Positions 46,162 through 64,000 of a stretch of 64,000 nt of DNA are shown in pieces. The translations under genes were made by a program, and so were the position numbers. The stretch covers positions 1,116,001 to 1,180,000 of the forward strand of contig JBBPEB010000002.1 in the NCBI GenBank assembly GCA_039096225.1, read 5' to 3'. Positions within the stretch are counted from its first letter, which is position 1. Every line of letters begins with the position of its first letter. The stretch comes from Blastocystis sp. Blastoise. Taxonomy: Eukaryota > Protista > Bigyra: Opalinata. Below the pieces are notes generated by a model. The model was not told the DNA's origin. It ran no database searches and worked only from the letters and a program-made list of their open reading frames with translations.

Positions 46162-46838
46162 ATGTTCCAAAAGGAAGTCGTAATTGATTGTCGTGGACAC
46201 CTTGTCGGTCGTCTTGCCTCTATTGTTGCCAAGGAAATTCTTTCTGGTCAAAGAGTTGTTTGTGTAAGATGTGAAGAACTTAACATTTGTGGTTCTAGTA
46301 TGTATATAGAATAGATGATATATAAAAAATATAATTAAAATAATAATAATAATATATATATATTGTTTTTTAATTAATAGTAATTAATTATTATATAAAT
46401 ATAAATAAAATAATTAAATAATAATAATAATAAAATATAGTGATGAGAAATAAGGTTCGTTTTGCTGCTTTCATGAGAAAACACATGAATACTAACCCTT
46501 CTAAATATTTCTATCACTTCCGTGCTCCTTCTAAGATTTTCTACCGTGCTGTCCGTGGAATGGTTCCCCATAAGACTCCTCGTGGTGGTATGGCTCTTGC
46601 TCGTCTGAGAGTTTTTGAAGGTATTCCTGCTCCTTTTGATAAAGTAAAGCGTATGGTTGTTCCTCAAGCTCTTACTAACCTTCGTCTTCGTCCCGATAGA
46701 AAGTTTATCCGTTTAGGAGATCTTTCTTCTCAATTCGGTTGGAAGTATGATGCTGTCATCAAGAAGCTTGAAGATAAGAGAAAGACTAGAGCTCTTGAAT
46801 ATTACAAATCCAAGAAAGCTGCTGCTGCCAAGAACTAA
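46162..46838 (+). CDS. RPL13A: 60S ribosomal protein uL13 (L13a)
   Basis: [40 protein letters not shown], one intron at 46299-46440, then [21 protein letters not shown]. Confidence 0.97.
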
Positions 46839-47367: not shown

Positions 47368-55859
<8,492 letters not shown>

Positions 55860-56477
55860 ATATATTATTATTATTATTATTATTATTTATATTTCTTTTG
55901 TTTTAGAAAGATAAATTATTTTATTTATAGACTATTTATGTTATTTTTTATTTTTCTTTTTGGCATTACATGAGTATACCCTGACAGCTATGATAGTTTA
56001 TATTTTAAATTGGAACATTTTATATGTATTTGTGAATGACGTCTTTCTACTTTTTGTTTTAAGCTGACTTAAAACCATATTTAATTTTATAAAACTTCAT
56101 TATTTTCGATGAGTAGCTATTATTTATTAATCATTAAAACTATTGATTTTTAGGAAGTGAAGAACGAGTCAGATATACCTTTTTAGAGTCGTTTTTCTCA
56201 ATCTCCTTTTCTTGGATATACGTATTATAATTGGCTTATAAATTATTTTAGCCAATAAAAATCTCAAATATTAAAGTGACAGACCCAATAGCAATTTGAG
56301 TTGATCAAAACAAAGAGAAATTAGCATAAGAACCTTTAATTTTTATACGCAAATTGATACAAACCAAATAACTGTACATGTATTTTTAAGAAAAGATTTA
56401 CAGTTCGCAAACCTGATAACATTTTGTTGTTTATATTTTTGAATATATATTTTTTAACCAAAAATTTCTCATTAAAA

Positions 56478-57633
56478 ATGGCTAAAGGTAAAGGTAAAGG
56501 TCAGAATGCTATTGATTCTTGTAAGGATGGTGTAAGCTGTTGTTGTTGTTGTGTCTTTTGTTTGATTTTCCTCCCTCCAATTCTTTTAATTATTAGCTTA
56601 TGCTTGTTGTTTGGACATAACACTCGTGTAGAAAGAATTGAAAAATATAATCAATTGGTTGTTGATTGGAATAATAAGGGAAGAGATACGTTTATGAATA
56701 ATTCTATCACTGTTGGTATTGGAAAGGATAATGTTAAATTAACAAAGATCGATAGTGCTAGTGGTTCATATTGGCCCGTTCGTGATTCTTGTAAACAAGA
56801 TGATGATCCTGCTGAAGGTTGTATTAAAACAAAGCCTTATAATCTCAGAGGTGAAAACTGGTATTCTTCTTATTCCAATGTAACACTTTATAATAACGGA
56901 ACAAAATTCTTTTCATCAACTATTGACTATAACAAATATAATATATATACAGCTAGACAACTGAGTTGTGATGATGGAAAGTATGTATATATATAGTATA
57001 ATGTTTAGTTGTTTAATAGAATGATATGTTGTTTTTTTCTTTATGTTTTTGTATTGCGTTAACAATGAATAATAATATATATAATATATTTAGAGTAAGT
57101 TGTTATGATAAATGTAAGGATAAGTCTGGTGTTTGGGATGGTTATCGATGTACTGTCACTTTATATTTATATAACATTTGCTATAGAGTTATTGATACTA
57201 AGAATGGTTATAGAATTGATACACCTGCGTATATATATATTATTATTATTATTATTATTAGGTATCATTTGTTGCTATATATTATTCGTTAATTTATCTA
57301 GTTTTTATACATCAAAATATATCAATATATATATATAGTACATTACCTCTTCATGGAGTTCAAGGAATGGGTTGTGAATATCACGATGGAGGATGGGACC
57401 CTGCTACTTATGTTCTTAACTCAAGATCTACTGTAATTGTTACTATTCGTTATTATGAAGATCCCTATATTATTGCTAGTGATTTAACCAGCGGATGTTC
57501 TTCTGATTCTTCTATTTCAACATCTTGTTTTGGTGCAACTAAGAAGGAACAACAAGGAACTGGTATTATCTTGCTAGTTATCGCTATTATTGGCCTTTGT
57601 ATTGAAATAGCTGTATATATAATAATATCTCAG

Positions 57634-57692
<59 letters not shown>

Positions 57693-57898
57693 TTATATAG
57701 ACTATTACACTTATGGTTTTCTGCTGTAAATCCAGTTTCAAAGCTATATTCCATAAGAAGGACAGTCTTATTCCTAATAAAAATTATGGTCAATATTCTA
57801 CTGCGCCTCAAGTAGTTGCTCCTCCTGTATATCAACAACAGCCCTATTATAACGCTTATAATACTCAACCTCAATATCCTACCGCTACTCTCGTTTAA
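56478..57898 (+). CDS. Hypothetical two-TM membrane protein with a Cys-rich extracellular loop and Pro/Tyr/Gln-rich tail
   Basis: Cys string CCCCC before TM1, Cys-rich exons, TM2 GIILLVIAIIGLCIEIA, tail containing APPVYQQQPYY; 3 GT-AG introns. Confidence 0.8.
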
Positions 57899-59119
57899 AT
57901 ATTATAAATACTGTTGCTTCCTTATAATTTTTTTTTATTTCTTTATATAATTTTGAAAAGAATTCTCTTCGAGTGTCATGTTTTGTTGTTTTTATATATA
58001 AGAATTTTATATATATGTGTAATATTCAAAATATAATTGTTATTTCTCATCTATTTCATTTATATAATTGTTATAGTTTATGCTATATTTATTCATTAAA
58101 ATATAATAAATAGATTAATACCTTTATAAATATGTACAAACAATATTCTTGTGAATAATTTATTGAATAATTTAATATATAAGAATAATAAAATAGCATA
58201 TATCTTTAAATGTATCATTCTATATATTCTAAATAAATATATAATTTCTAGTCTCTTATTCAACTTTAGGAGAGATAAAATTTTCAATATATACCAAAAA
58301 ATGTATTTAGATTTGTATTATATAGTTATAACGATAATCATTTTTAATAAGATTATTGAACATATATTATATATATTATCATGTTTTCGTATAACTACAA
58401 TAAAGATTCATTCAAATAAGAAAAAATCATAAAGCTAATTCAAACACACTAATGAATATATGCAGAATTCTACTAAAACACTCATTTCTTTTGTTTTCAT
58501 GATTGATTCATGTTTGTTTATATATCATTAGCATAAGAAGGGTTAAACATATTTATTATTAACCAATTAGACGCGTTCAATACCAGGACAAACAAAAGGA
58601 GATTCAATGATTTCTTATATTTTTATTATATCATAAATTTTCATACTCTCAATTCATTTGCGTAGTTATGCACTAGTCAAACATAACATTTATTATCATT
58701 ATACATCACAGAACATTATATGTGCTATAATAATTAATTCTTTTATAAATCACCAATAGCTAGATTGTAATCCAAGAATATCATGCAAATTTATTACTTT
58801 TTACAGATAAACATAACTCAATTTATAACAAGTATTTCTATAGTTTTCTTTACTACTGTTTATATCGTAGGCGCCAATCTGATCTGGGTCTATGATTATT
58901 ATAATACACCTCAATTGAAAATACTGCATTCAAAAATTAAATAATTACAAGCTAGTATTTTTAAAAAAGGACAAAAAAAGTCAGTGAGAAATACTTGAAA
59001 ATCATGGTTTTTTCTGGATATATCGAATATGACACTGAAAGCTCTCATAACTAGATTTTATTTAATTTTTTATTTTTATTTAATTTTTTTTTATTTGCAA
59101 TATAAATAGAAAACTAAAT

Positions 59120-60971
59120 ATGAGTATAATTAATTATGAAAAATTATATAAAGATGCCTATAAGTATTTCTGTGAATTTGCACTCAACCAAAGATACCAT
59201 CTAGTTGAACAGCTCAATGCTGCAATGCTAACAAATCTGATAAGAGTTGCTCAAATATTTCAAGATGACAGCAACAGTGATATGATACATATAATTTTTG
59301 ATATCTGCATTCAAAGACATGACCCTGATGCAATTCGTATAGAAATGGTAGTGTCTAAAAGCTTATATCCTGAAAAAGCTCCTTTTATTCGATTAATGCC
59401 ATATGCATCATACTTAATGAATCTTCAATATGATTGGATTAATTCTAATGGAGTTTTAAAAAAGTCTGTTATGAAAACATTTAAACCTGAATTAACAATT
59501 TCTCAAATCCGTGGATTTATAGAAATTCTTGTGAAGAAATACAATCTTTATTTGTATATATATCATTATATATATATACGTCTTACTAGTTTTTAACTAT
59601 TTCCAAATATATTTAGAAAAGGTATATATTTATAATTTGTTATTTACTGTACTATTATATAAATATTCATATATATATATAGTAAATTATCTTAATGGTG
59701 ATGTTTTTACCCCCAAAATTGTGGATCCACTTAACTATGGTCCAGATAATGTAGAAAATCCCAACTTTCTGGGAAAAGGACTATATGGAACTTACTTTAA
59801 ATCGTATGTATATATAGAGTAATGTATACTGATAATGATGTAATCATAATATAACCATGTTATGCTTTATTATTACTATAGTTGTTATAACAATCGTCCT
59901 GTTTGTATAAAACAAATTAAAAAGGATAATGGTGAGTCACAAAAATATATAAGTCGTGAAGTGGAAGCAATGACATTATTAAATAAAGGAGATAATAAAG
60001 GAATTGTTAAGTTATACGGAATAATTGAACATAAAGACAACATCCTGCTAGTAACAGAATTACCACCAAATGGCAATCTTTATACATATATGAAAAATAT
60101 AAAAAATGAGAAGAAAGATACAATGTCATTATGTGATATATTTAAACAAGTTGCAAGTGCTGTGGCTTTTATTCATGAAAACCATGTTTATCACAGAGAT
60201 ATTAAAGTATTAAATATATATATATTTTATATATATTATATATCACTTTATGACTGTTATTATAGCCTGAAAATATTTTTATGGATGAAAATAATAATCC
60301 TGTTTTGGGAGATTTTGGATTGTCACGTGTTATTGATGAAAAAGTTGATCTAACTAGCATTACTCATTGTGGCACATACCCTTTGTATATATATATATAT
60401 AATGATTATATTCTTTTTTTTTTCAATATGTTATGTAATTATTATTGTTTATTAATATTCTTGCCATTCTTATGTGTATTATATATATATATAGTGCTGC
60501 TCCAGAAATGTTTATTGAAAATAGTTTGATTACAAATAAATGTGATATATTCTCATTAGGTTTACTTGGCTATTATATTATGACTAAACATAGTTTAGCA
60601 TTAGAATTATTTAGTGATGAGGCAAAAGTATATATTTTTATATAATAATGTTATCATTGTTTATTAATATATATATATATATATATATATAGTGTAGAAC
60701 TTATAAAACAAATCCATCTTATGAAGTTCAAATAAATAGTTTTCTGAATCCAAGTATTCATCTGATTCTATATATTATCGAACTATATTAATACATTATT
60801 ATTCTTAATTCTCTTTATGATACTCATTATTACATATCTATATCTATAGTATTATATAACTTATTCCAGAAATGCTTATCTTTTAATCCTGACGAAAGAC
60901 CTTCTGCAGCTGACATTGTTAAAGAATTAGATAAATATAAAGGACCTCTATATACAAATTCTATTGAATAA
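59120..60971 (+). CDS. Protein kinase with an N-terminal UEV/UBC-like domain
   Basis: Kinase motifs LGKGLYG, VCIK, HRDIK|PENI, DFG, CGT..APE, DIFSLG and FNPDERPSA. N-terminal IRIEMVVSKSLYPEKAPFIRL...WINSNGVL resembles the Tsg101 UEV domain. Confidence 0.85.
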
Positions 60972-61760
60972 AGGACAAGAAGATAATACCTTTTCTCCTA
61001 GAGAGAGGTCATTGTTTATTCTTATATGAATATTTCTACTGTTTCTTATTGTTTAGTTTTAATTACATTTTTTACTTTCTATTCTGTGTATTTTATTCTT
61101 TTATTACTATCATTTTATTATAATATATGTCTTGTAAAACAGTCTGTTACTAATTATTATGATAATATATATTGTTACGTTTCTGTTTATTTCAGCATCT
61201 CTTTTTCTGTTATAAAGTATTAAAGTATATACTATTTATAATTCTATTTATCTGAGTATCGTAATAAAACCCAGATTATGATTTATGCACAAACAGACAA
61301 TTATCATTTTGAAATGTCATCATTTCATCTTTTTAAAATAATAATTCTATTATCACAATAATAAATACAACATTTCTAAACAAATATAGACATGAATTTC
61401 TTTAAATTTTCACAAGAATCTTAAATAAATTTGAAGACATTTCAAAGAAAAGCACACTCTGTATCCCAGAATAACTGTAAAAACCCTATAAATGTCATGA
61501 AAGAGATAATTAAATAAAAGAATCTCACGAAGAATTGTCCTAACTAAATAATTGGCTAAAATATGATCAGGTTTAATAAAAATACCTAGTAAACCATCTA
61601 GAGAATTTACAATACTATTTATTGGATAAAAATAGTCACTCATTTACTAGCTATATTTTTCTTCTGTTTGAATTTCTCCTTTTTATAGAATTTAAATCTA
61701 ATAACACATATATAAATCTTTTATTCTATAAATTTATTAATATCTCTATTCATATACAAA

Positions 61761-61928
61761 ATGAGTTGGTTAAGTAAAAATCTCAAAAAAGCTAATCGTT
61801 GGACAAATAAGCGCGTTATCCAGCCAACAATAGATGCTGTGAGAGAGGGTGTCGTTATAGGTGTTGCTGGGGCCATAGCCGGCGTTCCTGGTAGTGTATC
61901 AGCAGTTGTAAAGAAGGTTGTAAAGTAA
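61761..61928 (+). CDS. 55-aa cationic amphipathic peptide, cecropin P1-like; not in the ORF track
   Basis: MSWLSKNLKKANRWTNKRVIQPTIDAVREGVVIGVAGAIAGVPGSVSAVVKKVVK*. It forms a GC-rich island in AT-rich flanks, has an AAAATG start context, and has upstream ATTGG (CCAAT) boxes at 61551 and 61621. Confidence 0.7.
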   Translation: MSWLSKNLKKANRWTNKRVIQPTIDAVREGVVIGVAGAIAGVPGSVSAVVKKVVK

Positions 61929-62418
61929 TTCAAAAGAAATAATGTGCAATTATTATTCATTTTTATTGTAAAAAAATATTCTGTTATTATATTATATGTT
62001 TTGTTGTCTTTATTAGTATAGAAAATATAATAGACTTTATAAAATTAATAATTTATACAAAATTCTTTATGACTATATTACTTTTTTAAATACTACGATT
62101 TAAACAAAATTGAGACATATCGCGATGTTACACTAATAATATTATGGTCTTTAAATCTATTTATTATAATTATAACAGAATTTTATACAAAATATTCATA
62201 TCGATAAATTTGAATACAGCATAAAAATCAGTAAATAAATACCGAAATATATTCTATATTAAGTGTAACATTGCATATAATACATTTAGAATATATAATA
62301 TCTTAATTAAATAAGTAACTATGAATAAAATAAAAAATAACATAAATAGTCTATAAATAAAATAATTTATCTTTCTAAAACAAAAGAAATATAAATAATA
62401 ATAATAATAATAATATAT

Positions 62419-62465
62419 TTATATAAGATTATTCATTGAGAATAAATGTCGAATAGTTGGTCGAC

Positions 62466-62505
<40 letters not shown>

Positions 62506-62574
62506 TATAAAATATATATATACCCATGAGGACAATTCCAAGGCTGATTCATTTCGGATAAATGACGAACTATC

Positions 62575-62625
<51 letters not shown>

Positions 62626-62699
62626 TACTTTAACCATTTGTTTATATGTTAAACTCGTTCCTATCATTATACTATATCTATATATATATATATATATAA

Positions 62700-62730
<31 letters not shown>

Positions 62731-63626
62731 TACCTGCAAGCTTGACTAGCAAAAAGAGTAGATACTTTAGAAGGTCGAGGAAGAAGAGAAGATATATATA
62801 TAGAAGACATATTTGTAGGAATAGAAGAAGGAAGAAGAGGATGATCTTGAATTTTATGTAATAAATCATAAAAATCTATTCATAAAATATAATAATAATA
62901 ATAATAATAATAAATATAATATACCTTCTATATTAAATATATGAGATCGAATAGAAGGAACACCAATAATTTTTGCATATTCATTTATACCATATAATTG
63001 ATTATCATCTTCAATCACATGCTCATTATTCATCTCATCACGTACATAAAATAATATCTTAAATCCATTATATTCAAATATATATTTATAATTATCTAAT
63101 AATTGAATATCACTTGGAGTTAAACATAAAGAATTTGGACTATATAATAATATATAATATATAATATATATATAATACATTAATAATGGTTGAGTAGAAA
63201 TTGTAGTATTTATACAAATTGATTCATAATTATATTTTTCATCACAAGCATGTTGATCTAATATATAAAATTCATTCTTATATATACATATTATAAATCC
63301 TTTATTAAATTGACCAATTATATGCATATATTGAAAATCATCTTTATATAATATTTTACTTAATATTTTCTCTATTTCTTCTTTATCTTTATTATCTTCT
63401 TTATTTCTATATATATTTAATATTTATATATATATTTATTTTATTTATTATATATTTATTATATATTATATATATTTATATATATTTATATATATTTATT
63501 ACAATTTATTATTTTCTAATATCTTTCTATCATTCATTTCTTTATCTTCTTCTTCTTTTAATCTATATTTTATACTTCGATTTATATTCTTACATATATC
63601 TGAAATATTACATTTATAATTCTATA

Positions 63627-63658
<32 letters not shown>

Positions 63659-64000
63659 TTATTATTATATACTTTAGATTTCATTTCATTTGATTTCATT
63701 TTATTATTTATATTAATATCTAATAATTCATTTTCAAATAATTCTATATGATTCTCTTTTATAATCTCTTCTATTCTTTTATCTTCTTCATCTTCTTTTA
63801 TATCATTATTACATTCATCTATTATCATTTCATTATTATTATTATTATTAGTATTAGTATTAATAGTAGTATTATTATCAATAGTATTATTATCAATAGT
63901 AGTAGTATCAATAGTAGTAGTATCAATAGTAGTATTATTAATAGTATTATTATTATTATATTCATTATTATTATTATTATTATTAATAGTAGTAGTATCG
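62419..64000 (-). CDS. PMS2: Second PMS2 copy (3' part; continues beyond the window), inverted duplicate
   Basis: 62327-64000 is the reverse complement of 54212-55954; exons appear identical and intron microsatellites differ in length. Confidence 0.9.

Follow-up and report, generated by a model that had tools for sequence, protein, structure and literature searches.

Does the 55-codon open reading frame (ORF) at positions 61761–61928 of this 64,000-nucleotide stretch of DNA (the window) encode an antibacterial peptide? A sequence-only reading had proposed that it does, describing an unannotated, cecropin-like and leaderless membrane-active peptide of a probable gut protist, which would have arisen by convergence or by transfer. 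On present evidence, the product is an ordinary orphan membrane micro-protein whose resemblance to cecropin P1 is coincidental.

The guess at the organism was right: the DNA comes from Blastocystis sp. Rus-B of the Russian tortoise (PMC10690189). An HSP70 gene without introns from this genome shows 99% identity to KAK8807325.1 of Blastocystis sp. Blastoise. The Rus-B genome comprises 33 scaffolds and 33.3 Mb at 23.1% G+C, and amino-acid identity is as low as 56% for two more tortoise isolates, Rus-S and Hermann's, and 40–42% for human subtypes (PMC10690189). In the assembly, several HSP70 genes appear as equal-scoring copies across contigs or twice on one contig (C25, C16 twice, C4, C8 and C33 twice), a pattern that points to either recent segmental duplication or haplotypes left uncollapsed.

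The coding sequence runs on the forward strand from an ATG at 61761, in the start context AAAATG, through 55 codons of a single exon to a TAA at 61926–61928. We compared four public runs with positions 59000–62380. In one of these (X1), a 169-nt contig matches 61736–61903 with 100% identity and without splicing, defining the minimum transcribed stretch; the contig reaches back to 25 nt before the ATG, contains no earlier ATG, and is assigned to the forward strand from its coding signals. X1 represents RNA, because its 1504-nt contig of the neighbouring UEV-kinase gene has six introns removed. Since X1 left the kinase introns and the intergenic stretches 61151–61735 and 61904–62380 uncovered, contaminating DNA is an unlikely source of the contig. 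Contig depth was 6 over the ORF and 37 for the kinase (one study; contigs strandless). In a gut polyA metatranscriptome (X2) the ORF was absent though the kinase was present, a result that is uninformative either way. The sequence-only reading had looked to RNA as a check on its proposal, and the X1 contig supplies it: the 55-codon gene is transcribed, as recorded by one low-depth contig in one study.

The sequence-only reading had also allowed that the ORF might be an exon of a longer gene. The in-frame stop upstream (61716) and the ATG have no acceptor AG between them, and the 770 bp downstream of the ORF have a G+C content of 12–19% and carry no exon-like signal, so that no coding-like sequence precedes the arm of an inverted repeat that begins there. 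Given the missing acceptor, the unspliced contig and the barren downstream sequence, we reject the longer gene and conclude that the ORF is a stand-alone single-exon gene.

The arm that follows these 770 bp (62704–64000) belongs to an inverted duplication whose other arm lies at 54212–55520. The two arms are 95–100% complementary, differ mainly at microsatellites, and each includes the C-terminal portion of a PMS2/MutL-type gene, which in the right arm lies on the strand opposite to the ORF. A second copy of the ORF within this duplication was considered and rejected, as the ORF sits in the unique spacer (55521–62703), together with a two-span orphan gene and the UEV-kinase gene. The latter (59115–61150) is a UEV-domain/protein-kinase fusion confirmed as one transcript by the spliced 1504-nt contig, with introns at 59553–59680, 59804–59881, 60207–60265, 60376–60494, 60628–60700 and 60754–60849 and a 3′ end at about 61150. 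A word search with its UEV exon, in which the exons are short for the length band, returned no relatives. In X2 the kinase was found at 95–99% identity, which implies that another sampled animal harboured a near relative of this strain in its gut. In one X2 contig, 59681 is linked to 60091 through 35 foreign letters, with non-canonical ends (GT..TA); this contig likely stems from a divergent strain or is a chimera, and is not an isoform. On the reverse strand, a 77-aa hydrophobic ORF (61410–61643) lies 118 bp from the 55-aa gene, in head-to-head orientation. We considered it as a divergent partner gene and rejected it: it lacks both an RNA contig and a Pfam match, its codon-usage score is near zero (−0.06 per codon), and it is probably not a gene.

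The composition of the 55-codon ORF is that of a gene. Its G+C content of 0.44, against about 0.2 in the flanks, produces a peak of 0.35 in 200-base windows and is the highest among the 112 ATG-to-stop ORFs of 45–90 aa in the window, where the remaining high scorers are recognisable exons. An informal example of a true small exon in this ranking is the short G+C-rich ORF at 46162–46314 (+), which presumably resembles the N-terminal exon of a gene for an L13a-type ribosomal protein. By codon position, G+C in the 55-codon ORF falls from 0.55 (GC1) through 0.44 (GC2) to 0.33 (GC3). A codon-usage log-odds score, trained on about 3,500 codons from the window's long ORFs and exons, reached +9.0 bits in the frame of the ORF, the best of six, with the other five negative; per codon, the value of 0.164 lies inside the range of the training genes (0.13–0.51). 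The forward strand carries more G than C over the ORF, as it does over the forward-strand kinase gene, and this skew is reversed over the reverse-strand PMS2 copy. Finally, the encoded peptide contains 20% Val, 11% Ala and 9% Gly, no Tyr or Phe, and few Asn or Ile. Non-coding AT-rich DNA would be expected to give the opposite make-up. The ORF is more than a product of chance, and it is very probably a real gene.

These data also bear on the idea that the ORF is transcribed but functionless or very young, or that the true product is antisense, from an overlapping 79-aa ORF at 61721–61960. In favour of it one may cite the lack of relatives in any database searched, the lone, low-depth and strandless contig, and the fact that the antisense frame is likewise open. 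The sense frame and the antisense ORF, however, share their third-codon positions, as follows from the coordinates, and this is the usual reason why shadow frames remain open. Codon usage and the G>C skew both favour the forward strand, and the antisense ORF, with a negative codon score (−2.6) and the opposite skew, was rejected as a real gene. A peptide so rich in Val, Ala and Gly, encoded at 44% G+C, is moreover unlikely to arise by chance from DNA of 20% G+C. We therefore regard a functionless or antisense origin as distinctly unlikely.

The peptide itself largely matches its earlier description. With seven Lys, three Arg, one Asp and one Glu, its net charge is +8, as stated for an intronless 55-aa ORF. 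Residues 2–28 (61764–61844) are polar and strongly basic (seven Lys/Arg and one Asp), include W3 and W14, and are predicted to be helical and moderately amphipathic, with a hydrophobic moment reaching 0.72 in 11-residue windows and 0.45 in 18-residue windows, in line with the basic, Trp-containing N-terminal helix that had been described. The absence of a signal peptide was likewise correct: no hydrophobic core of that kind is present, and every window in residues 1–18 has a mean hydrophobicity below 0. Residues 30–50 (61848–61910) form an uncharged run of 21 residues and a predicted membrane span, with a Kyte-Doolittle 19-residue mean of 1.93, above the usual threshold for such spans. The run is rich in Gly, Ala and Val, with Ile, Ser and Pro also present, and contains two GxxxG motifs (G30–G34 and G37–G41) and a GVPG kink; it is followed by the basic C-terminal tail KKVVK (residues 51–55, 61911–61925, charge +3), so that the reported hydrophobic helix and its basic end are both there. 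A single-sequence AlphaFold model (pLDDT 72) places a helix at residues 3–40, a break at G41-V-P-G44 and a short final helix. The proposed QP hinge survives only in part: Q21-P22 exists, but in the model the N-terminal part and the span form one continuous helix, which breaks at G41-V-P-G44 instead. By its sequence, the product is clearly predicted to be membrane-seeking.

Searches for relatives were blank. Neither a word-index protein search nor an exhaustive HMMER search of 1.84 billion representative proteins (0 matches at E ≤ 0.001) found any, and NCBIfam and PHROGs gave no match, including no bacteriocin in NCBIfam. A Pfam scan at E ≤ 10 returned only DUF3042 (E = 0.94), with no Cecropin and no small respiratory or import subunit model, and the only PDB chain that phmmer matched at E ≤ 10 was an unrelated epimerase, not a cecropin. 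Foldseek found nothing in the PDB for the AlphaFold model, and a feature-based search of the ESM Atlas gave a best score of 0.79 with no usable named cluster. Back-translated patterns revealed no relative in JGI metagenome contigs or prokaryotic genome contigs, an exact look-up of the peptide on public contigs found nothing, and in its own genome the ORF matches only itself. The paralogues and orthologues that the sequence-only reading had suggested seeking thus did not appear, the gene being single-copy in its own genome and without a relative in the protein and contig searches. At a query length of 55 residues and this library size, an orthologue needs at least about 50% identity to pass, and small ORFs are often not called in gene sets; the blank therefore means "no annotated close relative" and not "no orthologue". 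It is also consistent with the description of the ORF as unannotated, although the collections searched may omit records from this genome itself. Micro-proteins are routinely missed by standard eukaryotic annotation, and the absence of this gene from every protein collection searched suggests that it was presumably missed in the gene set published for this genome as well.

How close, then, is the likeness to cecropin P1, whose sequence as quoted by the sequence-only reading agrees with that printed in PMC10414684? BLASTP aligned the ORF with P1 at 21.6 bits, with 13 identities in 36 positions and one 8-residue gap. In Smith-Waterman comparisons, one of 20,000 shuffles reached the observed score, corresponding to a Gumbel p of ~5e-5 for one pre-chosen pair; as thousands of known peptides and very many small ORFs are in effect scanned, this value is not significant. 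The shared SWLSKxxKK...KR...EG pattern is real, and after Met removal SWLSKxxKK is in register with mature P1, but the full pattern aligns only across the 8-residue gap. [quoted passage not shown] The ORF opens directly with the P1-like motif, ends in its basic tail, and has neither signal peptide nor pro-region. Its longest uncharged run is 21 residues, compared with 10 in P1, and the 19-residue Kyte-Doolittle maximum of P1 is −0.08. One cecropin trait is thus present, the amphipathic cationic N-terminal helix with W3 (moment 0.5–0.72 over 11 residues), while the family-level match, the precursor layout and the short mature length (~31–39 aa) with a non-spanning hydrophobic half are all missing. 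With no Cecropin match in Pfam or the PDB, no precursor parts and a full bilayer-spanning segment, the label "cecropin-like" holds for architecture only, and on present evidence the SWLSKxxKK likeness is a curious coincidence, unexplained beyond chance.

The same comparison makes it highly improbable that the ORF is a true cecropin homologue transferred from an ascarid nematode or another gut donor. Such an origin would fit the SWLSKxxKK start, which is in register, and the spacing of KR...EG, as well as a GC3 of 0.33, somewhat higher than in neighbouring genes. The similarity, however, lies below any database-level significance, and descent from a cecropin would require an 8-residue insertion and a 20-residue extension in addition to the loss of the precursor parts. 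At four-fold sites, GC3 is 8/30, compared with 16% for the neighbouring genes (p = 0.09); this excess is not significant, and foreign origin on that ground was rejected. Neither the start context of the ORF nor its flanks depart from what is usual in the host genome, and no relative was found elsewhere, so the suggestion of transfer could not be upheld.

Convergence would dispense with a donor: the product could be a leaderless, cationic, cecropin-like peptide that leaves the cell by lysis, in vesicles or through unconventional export and would permeabilise gut bacteria. Its charge of +8 and its two helices, an amphipathic N-terminal one with Trp and a hydrophobic one after it, give it the build of a membrane-lytic peptide, Blastocystis lives amid dense gut bacteria, and the local similarity to P1 (21.6 bits, 1/20,000 shuffles) can be read in its favour, although the pairwise p value is lost against thousands of known peptides and many ORFs. 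No match to Cecropin (Pfam), to bacteriocins (NCBIfam) or in the PDB supports this idea, and cecropins are secretory precursors (PMC6780910), whereas the ORF offers no signal peptide, pro-region or secretion route. Moreover, an uncharged span of 21 residues at the very C-terminus would be caught by the membranes of the cell itself. Genes for effector peptides usually occur in families, and this one has no paralogues in its own genome. A search of titles and abstracts on Blastocystis and antimicrobial peptides yielded no Blastocystis-made peptide. Taken together, we would be surprised by a released antibacterial peptide. If it were one, it would be the first antimicrobial peptide from a very common gut eukaryote, with a convergent copy of the P1 N-terminus, and would offer a molecular handle on the debated question of how Blastocystis shapes gut bacteria.

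We instead favour, at a probability of about 50%, that the 55-aa product is a lineage-restricted, tail-anchored, glycine-zipper membrane micro-protein residing in the cell's own membranes. Tail-anchored proteins are defined by a single hydrophobic segment no more than about 30 residues from the C-terminus, which is inserted after release from the ribosome. Consistent with this layout, the product has a single predicted span at residues 30–50, five residues from the C-terminus, and no N-terminal signal. The genome also encodes a Get3/ArsA-type ATPase (PF02374) of predicted function, with matches above the cut-off on contigs C15 and C5. These two loci, C15:1083929–1085159 (~31 kb upstream of the window) and C5:871900–873147, are multi-exon and near-identical in score, and form an apparent pair.

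The insertion route, destination and role of a tail-anchored product can be outlined from its features. Because the span ends five residues before the stop and no signal peptide precedes it, it would emerge from the ribosome only after termination and would be inserted into the membrane post-translationally. In tail-anchored proteins, moderate hydrophobicity of the span and flanking basic residues are associated with delivery to the mitochondrial outer membrane, or otherwise to the ER. In Blastocystis, which possesses a mitochondrion-related organelle, the moderately hydrophobic Gly/Ala/Val span, flanked by R28 and KKVVK, may target the outer membrane of this organelle, or else the ER. The basic amphipathic N-terminal helix would then face the cytosol, lying on an acidic membrane surface or holding a partner, and the GxxxG motifs could let the span pack closely with a second copy of itself or with a partner helix, as happens in small membrane-complex subunits. 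Should the organelle or the ER contain the product as a small subunit or as an anchor, this would be a lineage-specific part in organelles that serve as models of reductive evolution.

The nearest variant of the tail-anchor reading places the product in the inner membrane of the organelle. The first ~20 residues would act as a presequence and the span as a stop-transfer segment, leaving a subunit of ~35 residues, for example of Complex I or of the import machinery. Positions 1–24 indeed contain no acidic residue and six Lys/Arg, are rich in Ser, Thr and Asn, and are amphipathic; Lys in preference to Arg is expected in a genome of 23% G+C; and small organellar subunits commonly have GxxxG spans. 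We nonetheless consider this variant unlikely, since no small respiratory or import subunit was matched in Pfam at E ≤ 10 and the would-be presequence is continuous with the span as one helix in the AlphaFold model.

Set beside known systems, the ORF shares with cecropin P1 the N-terminal SWLSKxxKK, KR and EG and the succession of a cationic amphipathic helix and a hydrophobic Gly/Ala/Val/Ile helix. It differs in its length (55 residues versus 31), in having no paralogues and in its 21-residue span where P1 has a 10-residue patch, and from the Cecropin family (PF00272) in lacking the family match, the signal peptide and the pro-region. Leaderless bacteriocins, to which the sequence-only reading had also likened it, are similarly translated without a leader and are small, cationic and helical. 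In contrast to them, the ORF is a eukaryotic chromosomal gene between the UEV-kinase gene and a PMS2 copy, with spliced neighbours, no bacterial relative and no adjoining immunity or transporter genes; in view of these eukaryotic neighbours, the missing NCBIfam match and the missing prokaryotic relative, the comparison fails. Mic10, Romo1/Mgr2 and the ATP synthase subunits e and g likewise carry repeated GxxxG motifs in a short membrane protein, suggesting helix packing, whereas the ORF product would have one span, not a hairpin, and matches no Pfam model of these proteins at E ≤ 10. It also resembles tail-anchored proteins of the Tom5, Sec61 beta and phospholamban type, which have about 50–60 residues, no signal peptide, a polar basic N-terminus, and one span a few residues from the C-terminus followed by a short basic tail. 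The ORF has no sequence similarity to these proteins, and its span is unusually rich in Gly, Ala and Val and kinked by Pro. What is new here is thus a real and apparently unannotated gene, whose product most likely belongs to a known kind, the small tail-anchored membrane proteins.
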